From Thecamonas trahens ATCC 50062 (lineage: Eukaryota; Protista; Apusomonadida), in NCBI RefSeq assembly GCF_000142905.1, contig NW_013657668.1:498822-562821 (forward strand): a stretch of 64,000 bases of DNA, in the 5' to 3' direction. This document shows positions 48,763-64,000 of this stretch, piece after piece (position 1 is the first letter of the stretch; each line of letters begins with the position of its first letter). The notes beneath the pieces are model-generated. The model saw nothing but the letters and a program-made list of their open reading frames with translations, was not told where the DNA came from and did no database searches. A program made the position numbers and the translations under genes.

Positions 48763-51700
48763 ATGGCGGGAGCGCGTGTAGTATGGATGGTTATGGCATG
48801 GCTGTGCTTGCACATAGCCGGGGCAAGCTACTTTACCAAACACCAAGGTATGTTTTATGGGTGAGCCCCGGGCATACCTAAGTTGGCGCTCGGGCTAAAA
48901 GAACAGGCTTCGGGCATCCCCCAGTCGTTGTGTGGTCAACCAAACAACATTATCATTGTTTTTGAGAGGCGGGCCAACCAGCACCCACCCAGAGGCCTTG
49001 GGCGGCTTCTGGGCGGTGTGTGGAAGAAGGTGGAGGGTGAGACTTACACAGGAACGGCTTTCGTCATGCGCTTGGGGAGGTGGTGTGCTTGCAGAATATA
49101 CAAAGAGCGTTGGTGAGGCCATGTGGGTATCGCCCGAGTTGGCGGTTGGTCCGAGCGGAAGCGGAGCATTTTCCGCAGCCGCCACCAGCGGCAACGCAAC
49201 ATGGTGCACAGTGGCGCGTGGCATTGCTGCCGATGGCAGCGACCGGCTGCGATGTGGCGGGAGCATTGCCCTTGAGTTTGATGTAGAGACGACGGCGGCT
49301 TTTTCGGCGCGGGCAGCGGTGGTCCCGGCGGGCGGCTTTGGCACCGAGATGCTGGTCTCGATCACATTAGCCGGCGGTGAGCGACGGAGCTGGATACGCG
49401 ATGTGAGTGCGCCTGGCGCGACGGCACCGGAACATGAGACAGCAGCGCCGCTCATCGACATCCTTCCGCACTGTCTCCTCCTCCCGGCCGGAAAAGTGAT
49501 GATCGAGCTCGGCCTGACAGCACCTGGCATGGCGGTAGAGGCAGTGACACTGTCGACACTCATGCTGGCACCTGTTTTGGAGAGGGTGGTCGGATGCGAG
49601 GAGCGGATGGACGGGACGAGCCCAGTGTGTCCAACCGGCCCCGGGACTAGCATTGCGGTTCATGGCGCGCGATTGTGTGCGGATGCGGGCGCGGTGGTTG
49701 TGAAGTTCGGCGGATCGAGCGCAACTGTGATTGCGGTAGCCGAGGATGGGATGAGTGCGGAGATTCAGCTGCCAACTGTCGCGTATGGACCCACGACGCT
49801 TATGGCGATGGTCAATGATGGAATAGGACATCTGACGCTGCTGCCCGGGCTTCCGCTGATTGTGGCAGCGTCGCTCTCGCGGAGCTCGTCGCGGGTGGTG
49901 GTTGCGATGGAGGGCCACCGACTGGGACGAGGCGTTGTCGACGACTCGCAGGCCTGGCTGAGACTTGCGAGCGGGGTGGAGGAAGCGTGCGCCAATGTGA
50001 CGGGCGGGACGCCAAGCTTGGAGTCAGCCACCAGCCGGCTCGAGTGCTGGACAAATGAGGCAAGCGCGGTGGCGACGATCGGAGTGCGGGTAGCGGTGGG
50101 AAGCGCAAGCAGCCCGGTGCGATGGTTTGGCCCCAACGAGCGGCTTCGGCGCAAAGCAAAATGCGTCCTGACTGGCTGTGCCCATGGCGGCCGTTGTGAT
50201 GTCGCGACCGGCGCGTGCCGGTGCTCATGGCCATGGCTTGGAGCCTCATGCCGAAACGACGGGCGCTATCTTGTTGTGATCCCGATTTTGGCAATCTGGA
50301 CAGTCTCGCTGCTCGCGTTTGGACTTGTGCGGATTGCAGGCTGGATTGGTGACCGGAGCCACCGGCGGAATGTGAGTGCTTACTCGACGACCATGGGCGA
50401 GATGAGCGACGGGGCGATGATGGCGTCGACCATCGCGGTCTCGCTCGACGATCTTGATGTTGTCCGGACCGTCGGACAAGGCTCTTGCGGCAAGGTGTAT
50501 GTGGCGTTGTGGCGTGGGAGCGAGGTAGCTGTCAAGCGGTTCTTTGTCTCTATGCCGAGCGCTACGGTCAAGACCGAGTTTGCATCTGAGTCGATGATCA
50601 AGTTCCATGTCCGGCACCCGAACCTTGTGGCGCTCATCGGCGCGAGCGCCGAACCGGAGCGCGTTGCGCTTGTCCTCGAGTATGTGGCCAATGGGGCGCT
50701 CTTCGACATCCTTGGCAAGAAGACGATAGCGCTGTTGTGGGAGCGGCGGTTACTGTGGGCGTCGCAGCTTGCAGCCGCGATGGCCTTTCTGCACACGTCA
50801 CGGGTGGCGCACGGCGCGCTCTCTTCGTTCAACGTCCTCCTCAGCGCATCATGGGACATCAAAGTCTCCGACTTTGGCTTTGTGGCGACCAAGAAAGCGT
50901 CGGCGGCAGCGGCGGCGAGCCCCTTACCGATAGCGGGCGAGGATTGGATGGCACAGCAATGCGATATGAGCGTGCCCGGCCAGCCGGCGCTGTCTGGGAC
51001 GCAGACGAACGGATCGATGGCGCGGAGCGAGTCGGCCACAGCTGTCTCTTTGCGCGGGCTTCAAAGGCAGCCGGCCAAGCGCAAACGGCGGTGGACGTTC
51101 TTCCGCGTGGTGCCCGATGAGAGCGTGCCAGAGACCACGATTCACAACGCGTTCTGGAGCGCGCCCGAGGCACTACTAGGCGATGTCAGCGATCCGTATG
51201 CGGTTGATGTGTATGCGCTCGGAGTGGTGCTTTGGGAGCTCCTCTCACGGCGACCGCTGTACGCGGGCATGCATCCACTGACGGTTGTGCGCAACGTTCT
51301 GGATGTCGAGCTGCGGCCATCGACGTCGTCATTGCCGCCGGACGCGGTAGCGTGCAAGACGCTGCTGCGCCAATGCTGGGCGCCAGTCGGGCTTCAGCGG
51401 CCGACGGCCGACAAGATCAAGTCACAGTTTGAGCGACTGTACATCAACAAGCGGGGGGACAGAATGGGACGCCACCTGCGCCGTTCCACAAGGAGGTAGT
51501 GCCCAAGTCTGGATTTCTGTTTTCGGTCTCGGTCGGCGTGTGCAACGCAGCGGCATTTTACGAGCAGGCTGCCTCCGAGGTAGCCGAGTTTGACACGCAG
51601 CTGCTGCACTTGCGCTCGGCACTGGCGGCTGCAACCAAAGCGCACTCGGGCTTCTCAACCTCAGCCGACGCGCTGCTCTACACCTCGGTCTTTGGCTCGG

Positions 51701-54021
51701 CCAATGACGCCTTGGAGTTTCTCGCAGATGTGGCCACACTCACCTCGGAGCTTATCACGGTCGGCGACGGGACCGATCTCGCCAAGCGCGGCCTCAAGCT
51801 TGGAAGTAGCCAGGCTGTCAACTCGACCGAGCTGGGCCCGCAGCTCTCGAGCCAGCTCGGATCGGACATCCTCTCGCGAGGCAACATTACTGCCATGTCG
51901 GCACTCTCGCCGTCGTATCCGTCGGCGGGCACAATGATGCAGTCTAACGACATCCTCTCGTCGGCCTCTGTCGCAGGCCTGCCATCCATGGTCAACGCAG
52001 GCTCACCGGTTCCGAACGTGATCCGCTCAGGAACACCCGGACCAAGCCATTGGCGTCCTCCCAAGCCCACTACAGCCGGCCTCCACAACTCGGCATCGTC
52101 GTTGAGCTCGTCGTCATCATCCAGCTCGTCGTCATCGACATCGTCGCCATCGTCGTCATCGCAGTCATTGCCAAGGGAAGCCGAGTTGCAGTCGCGAGCC
52201 GGGCTCGAAAGTGGATCATGCTCGGACGAGGGGGTGGAGGGTCAGACCACGAGCTCAGACGTCGAGTCGGTCTCGGAAACCGAAACCGAGTCGGTGTCGG
52301 ACGAGCAAGGGACGGCTGATGAGGAGAACGAATCCTTCGGCGCTATGCGAGACGCAGTGACAGGCGCTTCTACCTTGCGTTCGATATCCAGCAGTCTGGG
52401 GAGTTCATGCGAGAGTGACCCGCGTGCGCTGACCTCGCCTATGATCGATGCCGGGATCATGGTGTTTGACTTGCGTCCTGGATCTCAGGCCAAGTCCAAG
52501 TCTCGGGCCAAGTCCAAGGCCAAGTCCAAGGCCAAGTCCAAGGCCAAGTCCAAGGCCAAGTCCAAGGCCAAGGCCAAGACCGATGGCGAGATACAGACTC
52601 ACTCAAAGTCGAGTGGCAAGTCTGCGCTGACACCCATGCTGTCTCCGATGAGCGATATGGCTTTGCCAGAGATGCCAGAGCTGCCAGAGCTACCAAAGCC
52701 CCCGACCAGCAGACGGCGGCGGAAGAGGCAGAGTCGCTGGTCAACCTCGAATCAGCGGACAATGCGGCGCCCGCTGACGCCGCCGTCTCGATCAGCAATC
52801 TCGTGCACGTCGTTGCTGTCGTCGGTGCCATCACTGGCACTGTCCAGAGTTGGGCCGGCGCCGACTGACCGACCGCAACTTCCTGTGGCGGTTGTTTGCG
52901 CAGCAGGCTCGGCAACGGTCATGGACGATCGCAGCGTGCAGGGTGCGTTTCTGCGCGAGGCCGAGATGATGGCGCGAATGCTGGTGGTGCCGGCACTGCT
53001 ATTCTCGACGAGCTTTTCGCGGTCGCTCGATCTCCTGGACGCCAAGATCTCCGACTCGCTACCCAAACCGGTCGTGTGCAGCCTTACTGCCGAACTGGTG
53101 ATGATGTCACGACAGCTGCCTGCAACAGCGACATGGCACCTGCTAGCTGACCAGCTGGTGCCCAACTCACAGGTTCACTTTAACTCGGTGCTGTTCGAGG
53201 GTTTCAACGGGACGCTCGTTCCGCCTCCGACCACGGTGATGGGCTGGTCTGGCGACGATCGGGCTCATGCGAGGGCGTACCGAGTTTTTGTAGCACAAGT
53301 CCGCCCGCTAGTTGCTGTCACGTACAAACTGCGTGTCGCGCTCCGTGGTCGTGCTGCTCTGCTCCACTCTGTCAGCCACGAGAACCTGCTGCCATTTGTG
53401 GGCGCGGTGACCCTCGGCCCACAGGTGTCACTTGTCTACGCCCGATGGGGCATCTTTGCGCCGCTCGATAGGGTCATCAACAACGTTGTTCTCTCCAGCT
53501 CGCCGGACCGGATGCTGACCAACATGCTGCGCGGGATGGTGCTTGGGCTCGCGGCACTGCATGGCGCAGGAGTCATCCACGGTATGCTTTCACCGGACCA
53601 CGTCCTTGTCTCGCCGACAGGCACCATCAAGCTCATGATGTATGGTATGGAGGCGATTCTGGCCCACACGGCGCCGCGGCTCGTTGCCACCAAGGACATT
53701 TGCCTGGCACCCGAGGTGGTGATGGGCGAAAGGGCGAAGCCTGCCGCCGACATCTACGCCTTTGGCGTTCTCGCCATCTGGCTCCTCAACGGCCGCCAAC
53801 CGTTTGCCAACCACTCACTCCACGAGTTTATCGCCGAAGTCACTGGGCCCGCGATTGATTCGCCACCCGAGCTGGTCCTTGGGGGCGACGCCAACCTCAT
53901 TCCCTCGCTTGCATCCGCACTGTCGATGGCGACATGTCGAGCGCCAAGCATGCGGCCAACGGCGCCGACGCTGGCGACGGTGCTGACCAGCGTTGACTCG
54001 CTATATCAAGAGAGCCACTAG
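48763..54021 (+). CDS. Receptor-like protein: signal peptide, IPT, EGF, TM, TKL pseudokinase, degenerate nucleotide-cyclase-like region, second pseudokinase; inferred intron 48848..49094 and frame break near 51455
   Basis: Exon 1 MAGARVVWMVMAWLCLHIAG.. with GTATGT donor and TTGCAG acceptor in matching phase. Kinase 1: GQGSCGKV, VAVK, HGALSSFN, DFG, APE. ORF 51499..54021 has no ATG at its start and is open back to about 51433. Kinase 2: HENLL, HGMLSPDH, LAPE, DIYAFG. Confidence 0.7.
52489..52578 (+). repeat. Coding 12-bp repeat GCCAAGTCCAAG (AKSK)n
   Basis: Read directly, about 7 units. Confidence 0.9.
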
Positions 54022-54079: not shown

Positions 54080-57000
54080 TTAAGCGTTTGCGCCACGAAG
54101 CGCCCAGAGCGCGAGCGACGAGACGTCGAGCTCGTAGATGACAGGCGCGAGCCGGGAGACGAGTAGGAAGCTCGAGTCATCAGGCACATCGAGCGCGAGA
54201 ACGGGAATGAGGCCTTGCTCGTGATGGACGTTGACGGTATCACCGGCGCCCCGTGATGCGGCGGCGGCCGACGTGTCGCGGAGAACACGCCGGCTCTGTG
54301 CCGCCTGGACCATAAACGGCTTTTCGCGCGAGTCCCAAAGGGTGAGCCGCGCAGGGTTCCCGGCCGCGCCAGCCCAGTGTGAGGCGAGCAAGCCCGAGCC
54401 CGAGACACAGAGACCACGCGGAGTCGCTGTGCCAGGCGCAGGCATCTCCTGGATCTGTACCAGCTTGGGCAGGCTTGCATCGCTGTCTAGAGCCAGCGTA
54501 ACGACCCGCAACGGCTCGCCACGCTCGCCGCAGGCCAGCGCCGAAATACGCTGATTCGGAAGGATAGCAAGGTGCGTGACGCCACCAAGCTTGGCGCTTG
54601 CCACCAGCGACCAGCCGGTGCCGTCGGCAAGGAGGAGCCACACGACAACACTTTTGGCCGAGGCTGTGACCATACGCCAGTCAGCAAGCGGTGCCAGCGC
54701 GTGGATGAGCTCGCCAAACTCGGCAAATCGGTACTGCGCGAGCGCGGGGAGCGACGGGTCGGCCTTTAGGGCAACCCGTGCCCCGGTCGACGTCTTGTAG
54801 TCAAGGACTGAGCCTTCGATGAGGACCAGGACCCGCTTCTTGGGCAGGGCCACAAGCGCCTTGACGGTCGGGTCGCGCCGGCCGATCGGGTGCTCATCGC
54901 TCGGAGCTCCGCCGGCGCTGCCGGCCGACGACCGCACATACGTCGAGCGGTCGAGTGTCCGCACCAGATGCCACTTGATGACCTCACCCGACCGAGGGTC
55001 GCGAGCGACAACCTGGAGGACGAGGACGTCGCCTGCAGCTGTGCCGACTAGAAGCGCGCCCCGGTCCGACTCAGCAACGGCAGTGACCGGCGAGTCGTAT
55101 CCAGGAAACGGGCCGACAGCGACGGCGTGAGCACTTGCGGCTGCGCCGCGGGAAGCCTGTGCGCTGGCGCGCTCGGCCACTTCTTCCGGCGAGAGCACCT
55201 CGGTGACAGCAGACGTCGGCGGGAGATCGCTTGGCGGGCGATAGACAACACAGCTACCGTTGGTCATGCCGAGCACGATGCGGCCGTCGACAAGTTCGAG
55301 CGCGGTGGTGACAGGCGCCGGGAGGGAGAATCCAAACTGGGCCACACGCTTGAAGGCCAGCGACTTGTAGAGCAAGTGTGGCGATCGATCGCGCAGGAGC
55401 TTGCGGCAGAGGCTGTTGTGGTACGAGTCGGCGAGGCCATTCCATACAAGATTCCGCAAACGGAGCTTGGCCAGTGCGTCGAGGTCTTCGCCGACGGCCT
55501 CGAGTTCGAGTGCGTTAGTAGTAGCAAGCGCAGCGTCGACGTCGGCAAGTGCAGCGAGCTCGTCGGGCGCAGCTGGGCCGTTAAACGAGATGTCGCATGC
55601 AAAGATGAGCGGATTGGCGGCAAAGGCCTGCGCAAGCTCGACGAGGACCGGGCCAGAGACGCGGTTCCACGCAATGTTGACTGAAACGACGGCCGAGGTG
55701 TGAGGAAGAACCTTAGCCACGTTGCGGACAATAGGGTCGCGGAGGTCGGCACCGGAAAGATCCATCCGCAGCCGCTTGGCGTACTTGTTGAGCTGAGTGA
55801 GGGCTTGCGGCGGGACCAGGAGCGAGAGGCCAAACTGGAGCCGCGGCTCAAGCTGCGACCAGACCAGGTCCGGCTGGCCGTGGAGGAAGAACCGCGGGTC
55901 GAGCGGGACGTGGTGCTCGGCGTCGAGAAGGCCGGCACCGAGTTGTTCGGGCAGGGCCAGGTACGAGAGCGAGCGGCACCGGGCCTCAATGTCGACGACA
56001 ACAGCGAGTGGGACGTTGGCGCAGCCGCGGAGGTCGAGCCGGCAAATCGAGGCAGCGGCGAGCTTGGCCACCGAGCCGACGGTGACAAGCTTGGAACAGT
56101 ATGAGACGTCGAGCCACTGCAGGTGGTCACAGCGACCGATGATGCGGGCGAGCGACTTGTCGTCGAGCTCAACGCAATGGGCAAGGACAAGCTTGCGGAA
56201 GAGGGTGCCGACAAGGGCCTTGAGAACCTCGCGCTGGAGCTTGGCCGGGAATGAGAAGAGGCCAAAGTTAAGGCGCTCCACAAAAGCCTCTTTGAAGAGA
56301 GGAAGGCGGAGGGCACGGAAAGGGCGCAGGTCAGAGCGCGAGAAGAGCGCGGTGACGGCGGCGTCGGCCTGCTCGTGGGCGAGATCGTTGAGCTCGGACC
56401 GGAGGTCGGCCGGTGAGACCATGGTGAGGTCAGCCCAAAGCGAGGAGGTTCGCTCGTCGGCGGTGGTCACCACCCGGCACTGTTGTTCGCGACGGACGAC
56501 GAGCGAGGGCGTGAGCGTGACCAGGCCGCGCCGGCCGCGCTTGTACTGTGACTCGGTGAGAAGGTGGAACCGCGCCCACGGGTTCATGGCCTCCTGGAAG
56601 GCGCGTGCATAGAGGGTCATGAGCTCGTGCTCAACAGCACCCAAAAGCTGCATGTGTGTGACGCGTGAGCCGCGGAGAACTTCCTGGATGAGAGTGATCT
56701 TGTGGTAAAGGACGTGGACGAGGCCGGGCTTGAAGAGCACGTCGAGTGTCGGCTTGCCTTCGGTATCGGCCATGTCCTTGCGGACATGCGGCAGCTCAAA
56801 CGAGGCCATGCGGGCGTCGATGGCCTCGAGCACGTCGACCCAGACGTCGAGAAGCGCGTCCGCGTGGACCGAATACAGCATGTAGTCGCGAAGGTCAGCG
56901 TCGACGGCGTCGTGCATCTCTTGCATGCAAAACAGAATGCACTTGAGGCGCGGGATGCGCTTGGAAAAGAAGCCCGACTTGGTGACAGCCGAAACGAACG

Positions 57001-60000
57001 AGTGATCGTTGTCGATGGGCACGATGCGGTAGGCCAGTTGCTCGGGGTCAACCGCTTCGCACACGTAGTTGTCCTCTTTGCCGTCTTCGGGATTGGTGAC
57101 GAGCGCGAGCAATACTTGCTGGGTAAACGAAAACGGGTCGTAGGAGATCGGGGTGTCGACTCGCGAGAGGGCAGCATCGTAGTTTTCGACGTTGTGACCG
57201 GCCGAGGCCCAGAGTTGCTTGAGTGTTGGGCCGGCGACAGTCTCGGACACGAGAAAGTAGTGGGCCTCGGCGCCAAAGTAGAGCTTGATGACGTCGACCC
57301 GCGGGGTGCCACCGGGATGTGGCGATGCGTTCGTACGGTTACCGCGGAAGAGGACCCGGCCGATGACGTGGACCGCGAGTTCCATGGCCGGCAGCTCCGG
57401 GTCGAGCTTAAAGTGAAAGTTGCCGACAGTGGCAACGGCACGGACACCGTGGTCGTAGGCACGGGTGACGGTGGAGCCAGAAAAGAGCTGCGCCACGGCG
57501 TCCGGACGGAGCTTCCGGACCTCATCGGAGCAAGCCGAGTAAAAGTAGGCACCGTTGTCCTCGGCAGCGGCGGCGGCGCAGAACGCATCGCGCGAGTCGA
57601 GAAAGTCGCGCCACCTCGGCATCTCGGCACGATGGGCCGAGATGCCGAGCGAGCACCACGAGGTGACAGAGCCCATACCGAGGCCAAATCCGGTGTACAC
57701 AGCATTGGGATCGAGCTGGCCAAACGAGTACATGACGTCGGAAATGTCATCGAGCGACGCCCGCCACCGCGTCTCGGTCAGGTACCCCAAGTCGCGGAAA
57801 GGGAGGCGGACAAGGGTACCTGGCTCGAATACGGGCTTGGACTCGCGAGCAAGTGTCTCGATCATGCCCGTCACAAAGTGAGAGGCCATGGTCTGGATGG
57901 GGCAGAGAACTTTGGCTACAAGCTCGCGGATCTCAGCCACTAGCTTTGGCGTCGCCATGCTTGGGAGAAGCACGTCGTTCTCCTCGCCTCGCGCGAGCTG
58001 GGCCACCATCCGAAGGCCAAGCGCAAAGCCAAAAGCATGGACCAGCGCGTCGCGAACAGCAACGTTAAAGACGCCGGCGTCATAGAGCGCGTCGAGGCGG
58101 GCGAGAGTCGAGACGGCAGACACGCCGAAGAAGAGCGCGAGACCGTCCACAAGCAGCATGGGAAAGCGCTGCAGGTCGGTCTTGACGTCGACCGTCACCT
58201 CGGCATCCGGTACCAACAGAGCACGGTCGACGAGCCACGGTGAGAACGTGCGCTCTGCGCCGGTGTTCTTGGCGAGGGCAAGGAGCGCATACGCCCGGCG
58301 GACTGGAGTGTCGGGGTGGAGGGCGAGAGCGGCATCTTCACACACAGCGACGCCTGCCTCTGTCTCGACAAGCGTGGCCATGAGGCGGCGATCAAAGAAT
58401 GCGTCGAGCGCCTTCTTGTATGAGGTGAAGAGATTGGCGTCACCTGCAATGTACGCAGCTGTCCGCAGCGAGTGCGCGATCGGATCAAGATAGTCCGAGT
58501 CGAGTGGCGGGGTCAGGAGCGAAATGAGCTCGCGGCGCTGCTTCGCTACAAGCGAAGCGGGCGTAGCCCGTGTGACAAGCGGCGAGAGCGCGGCCTCATC
58601 GAGGCGGAAGCCGCGCGGCGACCACGACGAGACCGGCCCGAGCTGGTATCCGGTCTCGCCGACAGTGAGCAGGAAGAGCTCGAGGAGATGTGCGAGTCGC
58701 AGAAAGTAGTCATCCCGTCCACCGGCGGGGAGGGAGGGGCATTCAGGCGCGAGTACGATATCGGGCTCGACGAGAAACACAATGTCCAGGTCGGAGAACG
58801 GAGCCATCTCGCCACGGGCCACCGAGCCGAGGCCAACCAAAGTAAAGGCAGACGGCGGAATGCCCAGGATGAGGGTGGCTTTTTCAAGAAGGAGCTCAAG
58901 GAAGGCCATGGCAAGCGCGTGGAAGACATCGTGGACAATAAACGCGCCCCGCGGGCCGGCCACACTCGCCTGGAGCGCCGGAGCCTGGAGGACGCTCACG
59001 ACAAACGAAGCGACGTCAAGCGGGCCGGCGAGGACGGCAGCAAGCTCATCGTCAAGCGGGAGACTGTCAAGGCGGGTTGCCACCTTGCGAAGGTAATACG
59101 GCGGGAGGACGTCGGGGAGCGGGTCGTGGAGCAGAGAGCAACCACTAAGCTCGCCGCCGGCGACAAGCGCAGTGGCAGCGCGGATGAAAGAGAGAATACC
59201 GCGGTGCTCGCGGACCTCCGCGGCAGCGAGCTCTGCTGCTGCAGCAGCGGCTACATCATCGTCACGCAGGCGTGCGCGCTCGGCAGCGAGACAAGAGGAT
59301 TGCGACGCCAGCTCGGGATAAGCGGTGACCAGCTCGCTGGCGGCGTCCAGGACCGAAGCTGCTGAATCGAAACGGTGGAGGCGGATCATGGTGTGAGTCA
59401 TAAAGAGGAGGCGGTCAAAGGCGGTGTGCAACTCTGCCGGGGAAGTAAGGACCGACGGGACGAGCGATAGGCTCAAGGTCGTTAGCGAGAGTGGGACAGG
59501 ATTGGTCACGGCCGCGCTGACGTAGTGGGAGAGGACCGATGTGAAGGCTGCCTCGGTGACCACCAGCAGCAGACTGTTTGGAGCTGCCATGTCCAGATCA
59601 CGGACCGAGGTGGCGTCAGAGTTGATCGGGGCGGTGTCGACTGCGTCGGCGAGGAGGCTGTCCAGAATGGTGACGGCCTCGGAAATAAAGAGCGCCGCGA
59701 GGCGGGTGCTGCTAAGGTAGCCGCGGCTGATCGAGAGTGCCAGGGCAGAGACGGCGAGGGCGCCAAGGTGCTCGCCCTCGAGCGCCAGAAAGTAGGCACG
59801 GAGGCGCCGGATGGTCGGCAGGCTCGAAAGCGCAGCATGTGACGACAACTTGCAGGCCAAGACAAGGATCGGCATCGAGACGGCGCCGTCATTGACGTTG
59901 GCGGCAAGCTCGAACGGAATGATGGCGCGAGTGAGGCATCTGGCAAGAGCTGCAAAGATCGCCGTAAGACTAGCATGGGCTGTGTCAAGACGCATCAGCG

Positions 60001-60690
60001 CGTCATCAACCAGCGAGCCACAAAGATCCTCGACAAGATGCTCGCGGATGGCGCGCGATGCGTCACTTGCGAGCCACGCCTTGACCAGCGGAAGAAACAG
60101 GTCGCCGAGTGGTAGGCACGGGGCCAAGTCGGCAGGGCACTCGCCTGAGAAACAGGCTCGAAGTACAGCCAGCATGTCAAGCGGGTTGTCCAGCGACGAG
60201 ACGATCTCGGCAACGATGTCACTTGCCGTTAAGCCGTCAGGCGTTTCGGTGAGCGCCGTAAGTGCAACAAGGTCAGCAGGATGCGGGACAGAGTAGGTGT
60301 CGAGCGGCGGTACAACGTGTACGTCGCCGGTTGCGTTGTTCACGACCACAGCATCGGGCCCAAGCGAGCCATGCGCACGGCCGGAGGCGTGAAGAGCAGC
60401 GAGGGCAGCAGCAAGTTGGGCAAAGACGCACGCGCGGGCGAGCGGCAACGGATGCGATTCTATAAAGTCTGCTAACGGCACAGCAGCGGGGGAGGCCATG
60501 GAAAGATGCCCATGGTCATGTCTGTCTCTGGGTGGGTAACGGTGGCAGCGCGGGCTGGGAAGGCCAGAGCCGGCAGCGGGTCCGTCCCGGCAACGATGAC
60601 CACGGGCACGTCATTGAGCGACGCGACCAATGCCGAGGAAGCGGCTGGGTGCGGGGAGGGGAACGAGAGTGTATCCCATGGTATTGACAT
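54080..60690 (-). CDS. ~2200-aa multidomain protein: degenerate kinase, helical repeats, GlnD/DUF294-type nucleotidyltransferase + substrate-binding helical domain, atypical (PI3/4K/HipA-like) kinase, LRRs, WD40-like propeller; one frame break near 60501
   Basis: LVGLGSVARGEMAPFSDLDIVFLV...GFRLDE (pol-beta NTase); VDVKTDL...STLARLDAL...LGLRMVAQL (DUF294_C-like); HFKLDPELPAMELAV...NPEDGKEDNY...IVPIDNDH; LQWLDVSYCSKL/LDLRGCANV; C-terminal beta-strand repeats. Upstream ORF MSIPWDTLSF (ATG 60690) joins with +1 nt. Confidence 0.75.
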
Positions 60691-60932
60691 GGCAAGAGAG
60701 AGAGAGAGAGAGTGTGTGTGTGTGTGCGTGCGTGTGGGTGGAGGGAGAGGGAGAGCGGTGGATATGCTTGTGCCCACGTGCCGGTTGTGGCTGACGGCTG
60801 TGGCTGACAGTCACACACACATTTACGGCGACATGGCGAGCGACGGCAGAGGAAACGGCAGTGCACTCTACTCGGTTGGGATAGGAGGGCTCGGGGGTGG
60901 AGAGGCTGGTGTCGTTGGCGATGGTGATGAGC

Positions 60933-62664
60933 CATGGCATGGGAGGGGGGATTGTGGCTGGGATAGGAGTGATGATGGTGGAGCAGTGGATGAGGGTGGT
61001 GGTTTGTGGTGATCGGACGTACTGAGTATGGTAGGGGGGACAAGGGGGGTCAAGACGTGGGTGGCGTGGCGGGCGACAGGGTGGTAAGTATGGGGAGTGA
61101 GCGTGCGGATTGATGTGGATGGGTATGGTAAGGCTGATGGCTGTGTGTGACGTGTGTGCGATGAGGGAGCCGGGTACTTGGGCGGCAGGGGGAGGAGGGC
61201 GGACGGATTGGATTGAGATGGACGTCGATGAAGACGATCGCTTGAGATTGGAAGAGGAGGCAGACAACTGCACTCTAGCCCACCACTGCATTGCATATCG
61301 ATTACCCTTGTCCTCTCTTGTTCTTCCTCGCCCTGACCAGTCCACAGGCTTCGTCGTCTGGCTCGGTGATCGCAGTTGGGAGGGCTGGCGATGAGCAGGC
61401 CGGCGGGGGCTGCGATGGGCAAGGCCGGAGGAGGGAGGGGAGGATTGGGTTGGAGGGCAGACTGGTAGTCATTGCTATTGCTGTGGCTATCCGTATGCAT
61501 CGTCTCCAATGCCCTGTCGATGGCGAGCTTGCTCTCGGTGGCGCCGGCGATGGTCGGTCGGCGGCGGGCGGCGGTCGGCGGCGAGCAGCAGGCGGCCGGC
61601 AGCGATGCTGTTGACGGGATGGCGTCGGCTAATGTGCGCATCGGCGCGCAGGGAGTGGGTGGATATGTTTGTACGGGTAGTGGGTATGTGTGGTGTGAGT
61701 GTGGTGATTGTGGGTGGGGATGGTGGGGAGTGGGGGTCGGATATGGGCCCGCGGCAGGGAGTCAGCACCTTCGAAGGGACACAGGGTCAATAACTTGGGC
61801 CTCAGGTGGCAGAACTCGGATTCTGGAATACTACAGCTGTGGATTGGAGACTGTACAAGGGGGTAGTGTGGGCGTGTAATAGAGTAGAAGTGAAATTCGA
61901 TTTGGCATATCTTGCAATGAGGTTGATGGGGGGCATGTGCGAGGTCGGGCGGTCGAGGACGGGCTCGACCACCTAGGCAAAACAAGCCGACGCGGAAATG
62001 AGCCGAGGAAGATGGGTGTCGATGACGACGATATTGATACTGGTGCTAGTGCATGGCGAGTGAAAACCTTGGGTGTGGTCGCGGGTTGTGTAGCTAGTGG
62101 TGGGAGGGAGCTAGGTGGTGATGAAGGTGGGCTGAACGGACGAGCGGGCGGCGGCTGGCGGCTGGTGGTCGGCGAGGCGGAGCAGCTGAGGGGGCTGGGT
62201 CGGGACTGGGTGGCTCGAAATTGCTGTTGGTTGGACGATGGGCAGCATGACTGGTGATGGTTGAGGGGTGGCGGTGTCGTGGGCGAGGATGAGGATGGGG
62301 GTGAGATGGAGCGGGAGAGACGAGGAGGACGAGGAGGAAGAGGAAGCCGAGTGCGCGATAGGGTGGTGATGGGTATGGCCATAGCATGGGGGTGGGAGTT
62401 GCAGCTGGAATGGGAGTGGTGGTGGTGGAGTAGAGGTGGGGGTGGTCGTTTGTGGTGACGGGTGGTAATGAGTATGGTAGGGGGGATGAGGGGGGTCGTG
62501 ACGTGGGTGACGGGACGGGCGAAGCGGTGGTGGATATGGCGATTGGGCTTGAGCATTGATGAAGGTGCGTATGATACGGCTAATGGGTGTGTGTGGGGTG
62601 TGGGCGATAGGGGCGGCGGGTACTTGGCCGGCAGAGGGAAGGCGGCGGACGTCAATTGAGTTGA
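60933..62664. repeat. Diverged direct duplication of about 285 bp in the subtelomere (60933-61216 and 62381-62664)
   Basis: Shared collinear blocks TTTGTGGTGA, TGAGTATGGTAGGGGGGA, GACGTGGGTG, CGGGTACTTGG.CGGCAG, GGCGGACG. Confidence 0.8.
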
Positions 62665-63642
62665 ACGTTGAATTAATTGAAGAAAAGCCGGAACCAGCAT
62701 CAAACGAGGCAATGACGTCCACAACAACAACCAAAGATCATACATGACTTGCACAGCACACGTAAAAGTAAGCCCACAGGGACTGGACAAAGCTAGCAGG
62801 CAATGGGATGGACTCGGGTGACGTTCAGGTCGATGACGCAGGGCGCGGTTGATCGATCAGATCTGCAGATCAACCACCACCACGACACAACAGGGTCAAC
62901 ACAAAATACATTGCATGAACAACTATTGACCATAGCCAACGACAACAAAGTTGAGAATCGATAGTGTAGTGAGCAAGGGCCGAAGATGGACGTCGGAGTC
63001 AAGGTCGATGAAAACAGGAGAATCAAGAACAATTGAAGCATGACGAATAATGATAAAAGCAACAACAAGAGCGAAAGGAATGATAAATGGGAATGCGTGT
63101 CGATTGTAGTCAACCATCAAAGGCAAGAGCAACCACAGCAGAACATGAAGGCAGACAATAGCAAACTCAAAGCATGCGGAAACATGAACGGCAAGGAACA
63201 AAGAACATGGTCAGCCGACGAGAACAGAAGCAGAAAGAATCGAATGATCAATTGACAATAATCAATAACAATCAATTGAATGTCAAACAATCGAACGAGT
63301 GACGAGTGGCGAATCATGAAAATGTTGAATGACATTCATGTCAAACAACAACCCGCACATGCCACTCGGCCGAGCAAGTGACACGGGCAAGTGTCAATGG
63401 AGGGATGGGGATAGTGAATCAGCATCAAAGACTCAATTCAAGCCCATGCCCAGCCATTCGCATGGTGGGATGGAGGATGAGTATGGTGGGGTGGGTGGGA
63501 CTGTGGATGTGGGTCATGGATGGGATGGGAAGGGGTGGCCAGGAGGCTGTGATTGGCAAGTAAAGTGAGTGGTGGTCGGTGGGGAGGTATGAAGTGGGGC
63601 TAGGCTTGATGAGGCATCAGCTAGGGATGACGAGGCATCAGC

Positions 63643-64000
63643 TAGGGTTAGGGTTAGGGTTAGGGTTAGGGTTAGGGTTAGGGTTAGGGTTAGGGTTAGG
63701 GTTAGGGTTAGGGTTAGGGTTAGGGTTAGGGTTAGGGTTAGGGTTAGGGTTAGGGTTAGGGTTAGGGTTAGGGTTAGGGTTAGGGTTAGGGTTAGGGTTA
63801 GGGTTAGGGTTAGGGTTAGGGTTAGGGTTAGGGTTAGGGTTAGGGTTAGGGTTAGGGTTAGGGTTAGGGTTAGGGTTAGGGTTAGGGTTAGGGTTAGGGT
63901 TAGGGTTAGGGTTAGGGTTAGGGTTAGGGTTAGGGTTAGGGTTAGGGTTAGGGTTAGGGATAGGGTTAGGGTTACGGTTAGGGTTAGGGTTAGGGTTAGG
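63643..64000 (+). repeat. Telomere (TTAGGG)n, about 59 units
   Basis: Near-perfect array to the end of the window, G-rich strand pointing outward; two single-base variants near 63960 and 63976. Confidence 0.99.

Follow-up and report, generated by a model that had tools for sequence, protein, structure and literature searches.

A telomere-proximal gene of Thecamonas trahens with a predicted DrrA/GlnE-class nucleotidyltransferase and an atypical kinase-like domain ahead of repeat domains

The gene analyzed here, C12, is located in a 64,000-bp stretch of the Thecamonas trahens ATCC 50062 genome (contig NW_013657668.1, positions 498,822 to 562,821; referred to as the window, whose coordinates are used throughout). 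It consists of a single open reading frame (ORF) of ~6.4 kb on the minus strand (54080..60499) that starts with ATG and comprises 2,139 codons plus a stop codon with 0 internal stops. The encoded protein combines a predicted nucleotidyltransferase (NTase) with an atypical kinase-like domain, followed by leucine-rich repeats (LRRs) and a probable divergent propeller. It is fairly probable that C12 is a functional, host-integrated T. trahens gene, belonging to a set of giant cytosolic proteins in which NTase and/or kinase modules precede the repeats.

Domain composition of the C12 protein

The modules and motifs of C12 are located as follows, the residue numbers (aa) being those of the protein and the basis of each assignment being given in brackets. 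All motif coordinates of a first-pass annotation, which had been made from the DNA sequence, were found to be correct when checked against the translation.

54080..60499 (-), whole ORF of the C12 gene, 2,139 codons plus stop
59990..60499 (-), aa 1-170, probable remnant of a protein-kinase C-lobe (weak alignment, language-model similarity)
60359-60373 (-), aa 43-47, HGSLG (motif check)
59003..59989 (-), aa 171-499, Ala/Leu-rich stretch, putatively helical (sequence only; no family match)
58382..58951 (-), aa 517-706, pol-beta-fold NTase core, DUF294/DrrA-like, with G558-S559, D571-x-D573 and D634 (Pfam, profile, motifs)
58778-58834 (-), aa 556-574, GLGSVARGE / SDLDIV (motif check)
58595-58612 (-), aa 630-635, GFRLDE (motif check)
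57890..58324 (-), aa 726-870, helical NTase partner of the DUF294_C / GlnD-GlnE-DrrA type (Pfam DUF294_C and DrrA alignment)
56465..57547 (-), aa 985-1345, atypical kinase domain with a PI4K-type-II-like fold (alignment, AlphaFold2 model, fold search)
57371-57418 (-), aa 1028-1043, FHFK...ELPAMELAV (motif check)
57062-57094 (-), aa 1136-1146, NPEDGKEDNYV (motif check)
56993-57019 (-), aa 1161-1169, PIDNDHSFV (motif check)
55940..56227 (-), aa ~1425-1520, Cys-containing LRRs of the FBXL/SKP2 type (paralogue profile; weak Pfam LRR_13 match)
55400..55771 (-), aa ~1577-1700, LRRs of the ribonuclease-inhibitor/NLRP type (paralogue profile)
54083..55357 (-), aa 1715-2139, divergent WD40-like region, probable beta-propeller (paralogue profile, hhalign)

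The pol-beta motif hG[GS]x9-13Dh[DE] is present in C12 as GLGSVARGEMAPFSDLDIV (aa 556-574) and is kept in all five Thecamonas NTase paralogues as well as in 10 of 11 relatives from bacteria and other eukaryotes. The third carboxylate, D634 in GFRLDE, falls into a column that is nearly invariant in the NTase alignment of the 11 relatives and pairs with the Asp of 'YPDP' in DrrA. The C12 segment alone has no match in the PDB; DrrA is reached only by the profile of 11 sequences, which aligns with the DrrA adenylyltransferase 6yx5_B across the core and the helical domain (E 1.8e-11), pairing the G-S, D-x-D and third-Asp columns, and with GlnE (E 0.003). Since the motifs are kept and the profile matches both enzymes, the NTase is assigned by sequence to the DrrA/GlnE class of protein nucleotidyltransferases, with a predicted intact active site. 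Furthermore, Pfam DUF294_C was detected at aa 770-841 with an E-value of 3e-8 and 34 bits, which is above the cut-off of 22.5 bits. The pol-beta NTase with a DUF294_C-like partner that had been proposed from the sequence was confirmed by this match, the intact motifs and the profile alignment with DrrA.

DrrA/SidM and GlnE/GlnD share this construction, a helical partner coming after a pol-beta core whose motifs are G-S...D-x-D and a third Asp; the Pfam families of this class are SidM_N, DUF294 with DUF294_C, and GlnD_UR_UTase. DrrA AMPylates Rab1, and GlnE modifies glutamine synthetase. In contrast to DrrA, the NTase of C12 is encoded by a eukaryote and is embedded in a protein of 2,139 residues without a guanine nucleotide exchange factor (GEF) or P4M domain. 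DrrA-like proteins were described as very rare and limited to Legionella in a survey from 2015 (PMC4454073).

For the kinase-like domain, an alignment of 44 sequences revealed K1031, E1040, D1139, K1141, N1144 and D1163-N1164-D1165 to be invariant or nearly so. The AlphaFold2 model calculated from this alignment reached a predicted local distance difference test (pLDDT) of 88.6 and a predicted template modelling score (pTM) of 0.90. It replaced a first model with a pLDDT of 58, for which an alignment of only five paralogues had been used and whose weak fold matches already indicated PI4KII. K1031, E1040, D1139, N1144 and D1163 fall into the expected secondary-structure elements of the model, as judged at the level of these elements.

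The best fold match, obtained with VIA-align, was PI4KII alpha (4hnd_A; Z 16.4, root-mean-square deviation 3.8 A, 252 of 361 residues, 12% identity). The runner-up follows about 5 Z below at Z 11.5, and the next matches are all atypical or lipid kinases; actin-fragmin kinase, ATM/SMG1, CotH, Vps34, PI4KIII beta, Fam20, MavQ (Z 9.4) and HipA are found at Z 9-11.5. The Foldseek search suggested in the first-pass annotation was run on this domain and returned PI4KII beta (E 1.2e-4, probability 1.0). The second kinase-like catalytic domain noticed earlier by its motifs is thus real, as indicated by the conserved K/E/D/N/D residues and the fold match, and in the model it looks catalytically competent.

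The sequence D-G-K-x-D-N ... I-D-N-D of C12 presumably resembles the catalytic and Mg-binding loops of PI4KII. The likeness to PI4KII alpha and beta is one of fold, whereas the identity of 12%, the lack of a Pfam PI3_PI4_kinase match, the multidomain context and the mostly bacterial distribution of its family set the C12 kinase apart. In LepB_N, MavQ and OpiA/LegA5/AnkK of intracellular bacteria, an atypical kinase fold is likewise part of effector-type proteins that have Ank or further eukaryote-like repeats. Clusters bearing LepB_N are language-model neighbours of the C12 kinase with a score of 0.94, a similarity to be taken as a lead only; the Pfam LepB_N model had no match in the 44 family members. 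LepB, AnkK and MavQ were described as atypical phosphoinositide kinases in a survey of the Legionella pan-kinome, in which several of these kinases are still outside Pfam (PMC9758233).

The repeat domains were identified mainly via the paralogues of C12 in the T. trahens genome, which are listed below. The first-pass annotation had noted two LRR types, and both could be verified at the level of a paralogue profile (aa ~1400-1715), which matched FBXL2 (E 4.9e-27), FBXL17 and SKP2 at positions 26-132 and a ribonuclease-inhibitor-like protein (E 1.5e-11) as well as NLRP LRRs at positions 183-325. For the propeller claimed there, the outcome is divided: a profile of five paralogue C-termini matches WD40 structures with an E-value of 1.9e-36, whereas the C12 C-terminus alone has no match in Pfam or PDB. 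An unmistakable WD40 propeller is present in paralogue C24, and the C12 C-terminus aligned to the profile of the other paralogues with a probability of 65% and an E-value of 5.9e-5 (hhalign). By these comparisons, the C12 C-terminus is probably a divergent propeller.

A dead kinase with HGSLG had been proposed for the N-terminus, and this claim stood in part. HGSLG is found at aa 43-47 in place of HRDLK, and both DFG and an N-lobe are lacking, so that the segment, provided that it is a kinase, would be catalytically dead. A weak alignment links it to helix E and the catalytic loop in the Pkinase domain of paralogue C6b, and in ESM language-model features aa 1-200 lie near short kinase clusters (score 0.95). 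On the other side, no Pfam family including the Pkinase hidden Markov model matched the N-terminal segment. BLAST of the N-terminal 520 residues against the Thecamonas paralogues and the Pkinase of the eukaryotic relative P0077 gave no match, and a tblastn search between the ATG and the telomere revealed no upstream exon for a kinase N-lobe. In the relatives C6b and P0077, a genuine Pkinase is located ahead of the NTase in the same position. The segment is therefore described as a probable remnant of a dead kinase rather than as an established pseudokinase.

Relatives in bacteria and other eukaryotes and direction of transfer

Word-indexed protein searches with the C12 protein returned almost nothing past one paralogue. 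This reflects the search method, since an exhaustive profile search with the kinase domain detected 1,353 cluster representatives at E<=1e-3, of which 314 had E<=1e-30. Nearly all of these relatives are proteins of 1,000-5,000 residues. The partner domains in a census of 30 members were LRR_6 (14), LRR_4 (13), Ank (8), F-box-like (3) and WD40 (2); HEAT and TIR domains occur in family member P0007.

A scan of prokaryotes with one genome per species identified 40 loci. All of them are located in genomes or metagenome-assembled genomes (MAGs) of Paracaedibacteraceae (including Paracaedibacter symbiosus), Holosporales, other Alphaproteobacteria, Chlamydiae, Dependentiae, Coxiellaceae and Gammaproteobacteria. 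A Dependentiae genome of 1.1 Mb contains 19 kinase-domain matches and a gammaproteobacterial MAG of 2.4 Mb contains 15. The class to which the Coxiellaceae MAG belongs (Gammaproteobacteria) was sampled evenly with 201 genomes, and the domain was found in 16 of them, mostly genomes of 1.5-3.2 Mb.

Similar NTase and DGKxDN kinase modules had been mentioned in the first-pass annotation for effectors of amoebal endosymbionts, and this proved right for both. Among intracellular bacteria associated with amoebae, giant Ank/LRR/F-box proteins frequently contain the kinase, and DUF294 occurs in NEX2, an expanded effector-like family of Neochlamydia with the order F-box-(OTU)-DUF294-TPR, in which DUF294 is placed mid-protein between eukaryote-like interaction domains (PMC4209131). 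NEX2 resembles the bacterial relatives found here, which join Ank, LRR_6, F-box-like, WD40, HEAT and TIR domains. It differs from C12 in being described without a kinase module and in being encoded by a symbiont and not by the protist.

Relatives of informative architecture are the following:

P0060, bacterial, on a contig with IS66 and PIN genes and 35% GC: DUF294 + DUF294_C + kinase + LRR
P0127 and P0110, P0127 in bacterial context with 37% GC: NTase + kinase + strong WD40 arrays
P0118, metagenome: DUF294 + DUF294_C + kinase + LRR_6 + Ank
P0003, Cupriavidus protein annotated as DUF294-containing: Ank + DUF294 + DUF294_C + kinase
L041, L043 and L045, gammaproteobacterial MAG: NTase + kinase
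P0134, eukaryotic, on a 63%-GC contig beside EBP and CEP76-type genes: NTase + kinase
P0077, eukaryotic: intron-split Pkinase, then NTase + kinase + LRR + WD40, with RhoGEF + MORN gene pieces after it
P0139, metagenome: SidM_N-type NTase + several Ras/Roc/Arf GTPase domains + kinase-like domain

The NTase-kinase pair is not an invention of Thecamonas, as bacteria and two further uncultured eukaryotes have it too, and the order NTase-kinase-LRR-WD40 is conserved in bacteria and other eukaryotes.

A quick IQ-TREE tree was calculated from 84 kinase domains; it is unrooted and several of its eukaryotic branches are long. C12 groups with paralogue C73, and this pair then groups with C6a and the eukaryotic P0134 (SH-like approximate likelihood ratio test 86). 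The paralogues C3 and C24 are placed near NTase-linked sequences without a resolved position. A set of 70 sequences, almost all without an NTase, forms a separate group with a support of 82; half of its rows originate from named bacterial MAGs and the rest are metagenomic proteins. When the seven eukaryotic sequences were forced into one clade, the likelihood was slightly better (+1.84), with a p-value of 0.52 in the approximately unbiased test, so that these sequences are compatible with a single origin of the eukaryotic copies.

The bacterial nesting that would indicate a horizontal source was not seen: the eukaryotic copies are nested in no particular bacterial clade of this unrooted tree. 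Overall, the cassette appears to have been exchanged between protists and their intracellular bacteria, and the direction from bacteria to eukaryotes is somewhat more likely. It is favoured because NTases of the DUF294/GlnE/DrrA kind are bacterial in character and because the diversity is much larger in bacteria, whereas the 'eukaryote-like' partner domains and the closest fold, that of PI4KII, favour the reverse direction. PI4KII is, to our knowledge, a eukaryotic family.

Three further observations concern these relatives. Most of the bacterial members (L020-L059) have two tandem kinase-like domains, the N-terminal copy being far more divergent, and these may possibly represent pseudokinase-kinase pairs. 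In P0077 (L063:669-7377), the Pkinase is intact (VAVKK, HRDLKSPN) and the NTase motif is degenerate (SNVK for SDLD), which is the reverse of the pattern in C12. P0139 (JGI metagenome 3300059835, 158-kb contig) is located directly upstream of a 2,642-aa protein with DUF294, DUF294_C and Ank.

Chromosome-end setting and paralogues of C12

The 5' end of the C12 gene is supported at 60499. The nearest in-frame stop is found 37 codons upstream of this ATG; the upper limit of 60690 in the first-pass annotation had to be withdrawn, the ATG there lying in another frame with stops just past 60499. Two further features lie beyond the start codon:

60916..63640 (no strand assigned), subtelomeric repeat element, context only, outside the gene (genome-wide comparison)
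~63645..64000, the window end (+), (TTAGGG)n telomere (sequence reading)

Copies of this 2.7-kb element with 83-90% identity, often in partial tandem, were detected at at least 40 other contig ends of the 28.7-Mb assembly. The start codon of C12 is ~420 bp away from the inner boundary of the element and 3.1 kb away from the (TTAGGG)n repeats. Because the region 60916-63640 recurs at so many contig ends, no unique gene follows C12 on this chromosome arm. The earlier description as the last gene before the telomere therefore holds.

C12 is located on a contig of 562,821 bp, flanked by a eukaryotic-type receptor gene and by the subtelomeric repeat with its TTAGGG telomere. The GC content across the gene is 62-65%, equal to that of the flanks (genome 62%). 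Host integration is thus supported by the host-gene flank, the genome-wide subtelomeric repeat and the flank-like GC content, the contigs of two bacterial homologues having 35-37% GC. C12 and its neighbour on the plus strand (ORF 51499-54021) are arranged tail-to-tail with stop codons 58 bp apart, and the short unique sequence separating the ATG from the subtelomeric element contains a compound (GA)n(GT)n microsatellite (60697-60740).

Six-frame searches of the assembly revealed seven related loci, C12 included, with the following composition:

C12 (present gene): NTase + kinase + LRR + WD40-like
C24: NTase + kinase + LRR + WD40
C6a: NTase + kinase + LRR + WD40
C73: kinase-like domain with degenerate kinase motifs; no family in Pfam
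C3: kinase-like domain, then many LRR_6 repeats
C6b: Pkinase + NTase, with LRR_6 in the next frame
C4: NTase + weak WD40

Because the identities are 20-43%, the loci are interpreted from their sequences as old duplicates. C12 is the only one of the seven adjoining a telomere, and two of the seven are located within 10 kb of a contig end. The second of these, C24, is 8.6 kb from a contig end without telomere repeat and with another large ORF beyond it; the remaining loci are internal on their contigs. As ~9% of the assembly is within 10 kb of a contig end, two of seven loci correspond to a binomial p of ~0.13, and the proposed subtelomeric enrichment of the paralogues did not hold.

Some of the paralogues deviate from the common pattern. 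In C73 (L015:2444-8575), SPEDACPRGYV replaces NPEDGKxDNYV and VRTGRGRAF replaces IDNDHAF, so that its kinase domain is probably a dead copy, judging by these motifs. For C6a (L014:5537-6856, contig C6), the genomic ORF encodes the complete NTase motif GLGSLAREEMCPFSDLDAILLV, whereas the public gene model AMSG_01683 (P0002) is without exactly the GLGSLAREEMCPFSDLDAILLV segment, the catalytic NTase motif having probably been misread or removed as an intron in this model. The contig of C4 has no telomere repeats at its start (L065, bases 1-60), which lies inside the subtelomeric element in reverse complement, and the NTase + WD40 paralogue is located ~32 kb from this end.

Possible function and alternative explanations

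By analogy with the enzymes of its class, the NTase would most likely transfer AMP, or another nucleoside monophosphate, onto a hydroxyl of a target protein. The kinase, as modelled, would most likely phosphorylate a phosphoinositide or possibly a protein. Recruitment of the target or of regulators would fall to the two LRR arrays, of FBXL and RI type, and to the WD40-like region. That both enzymes act on one pathway, the small-GTPase/phosphoinositide identity of membranes, is a rather doubtful idea, put forward because of the analogy to the Legionella proteins DrrA (Rab1 AMPylase) and LepB (phosphoinositide kinase) and because of the P0139 fusion.

It is unlikely, if conceivable, that C12 belongs to a protist-encoded toolkit of a DrrA-type AMPylase and an atypical phosphoinositide kinase, of which Thecamonas and at least two further uncultured eukaryotes would have versions of their own and with which intracellular bacteria rewrite the membrane identity of their hosts. 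The protist proteins would then be repeat-gated counter-effectors or sensors that re-mark compartments when an invader or a perturbed GTPase is recognised by the LRR/WD40 arrays, and would form an undescribed cell-autonomous defence or trafficking-control system sharing ancestry with bacterial effectors. No description of the NTase-kinase-LRR-WD40 architecture was found in the literature that was searched. The kinds of components are known, whereas the eukaryote-encoded DrrA-class NTase, the kinase family without a curated model and the conserved fusion of both are new.

If these assignments are true, a very large kinase-like family without a Pfam or NCBIfam model would exist that apparently makes up a large part of the effector-like repertoires in protist-dwelling bacteria. 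DrrA-class protein AMPylases would not be confined to Legionella, in contrast to the survey cited above (PMC4454073), and would also occur inside eukaryotic genes. The conserved AMPylase-PI4K-like fusion in bacteria and eukaryotes would predict that both activities meet on one pathway, and it could explain a competition of host and symbiont over the Rab and phosphoinositide identity of vacuoles.

Several points weigh against the interpretation of C12 as a functional gene with these two enzymatic modules. The DUF294 core of C12 (aa 521-579) scores 17.6 bits (E 0.0036), which is just under the Pfam gathering cut-off of 21, whereas its counterparts in C6b and C4 exceed the cut-off with 36.2 and 27 bits, respectively. 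The N-terminal kinase remnant and the propeller are weakly supported in the C12 copy, the propeller depending on the paralogues, and the small-GTPase link draws on analogy and on one fusion protein, P0139. The substrate class of the kinase was read solely from the fold, because the domain and its 43 relatives have no sequence match in Pfam (E<=1), NCBIfam or PDB kinases. Some kinase folds catalyze other reactions (SelO, SidJ), and the protein kinases actin-fragmin kinase, CotH, Fam20 and HipA also match the fold at Z 9-11.5.

These matches, together with CtkA in the same range and the lack of a sequence-level link from the family to PI3/PI4 kinases, would suit a protein kinase or else a pseudokinase that acts as a different kind of transferase, which would make C12 a two-headed protein modifier. 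This is a possible but somewhat unlikely explanation, as PI4KII alpha is ~5 Z above all others with 252 of 361 residues covered and lipid and PIKK kinases are frequent in the next fold tier. Clusters with LepB_N are, again as a lead only, among the language-model neighbours, and LepB is listed as a phosphoinositide kinase (PMC9758233).

The first-pass annotation had proposed a possible innate-immune or conflict role, in which a microbial ligand would be sensed by the LRR/WD40 arrays and the AMPylase and kinase would be set free as effectors against the invader or the own cell. In its layout of repeats, enzymatic core and WD40, C12 does resemble ROCO/LRRK proteins such as LRRK2, and its C-terminal array with RI/NLRP-type LRRs is similar to the sensor ends of NLR and ROCO proteins. 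The strong divergence inside the genome (20-43% identity), the relatives in proteins of host-associated bacteria, one of them with TIR, and the C12 copy beside the telomere would also fit. However, the enzymatic core of C12 is an NTase with an atypical kinase, unlike that of ROCO and NLR proteins. According to Pfam, no Roc GTPase with COR is present in the C12 protein, Ras/Roc/Arf domains being found only in the distant relative P0139, and neither a NACHT/NB-ARC/STAND NTPase (E<=1) nor a TIR or death-fold domain was found in C12 or its Thecamonas paralogues. Only one of the seven loci adjoins a telomere, and the repeat regions are those of old divergent paralogues and not of hypervariable near-copies. 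Without a STAND switch, a TIR/death effector or subtelomeric clustering, the proposed defence role was not borne out and is considered unlikely.

Compared with a functional host gene, a decaying, functionless relic of a horizontally acquired bacterial effector gene is very improbable. The subtelomeric site, the N-terminal kinase reduced to a remnant, the propeller too divergent for Pfam and the loss of the kinase motifs in paralogue C73 would be expected for such a relic, but 2,139 codons are free of stops, all catalytic residues of both enzymes are kept and the composition is host-like. The mostly bacterial relatives of the kinase domain could also raise the suspicion that the assembly was contaminated by a bacterial symbiont or prey, the chance of which is practically negligible: the gene is located on a 562,821-bp contig between the eukaryotic-type receptor gene and the subtelomeric repeat with TTAGGG, has the 62-65% GC of its flanks and is accompanied by six further related loci on other large contigs.

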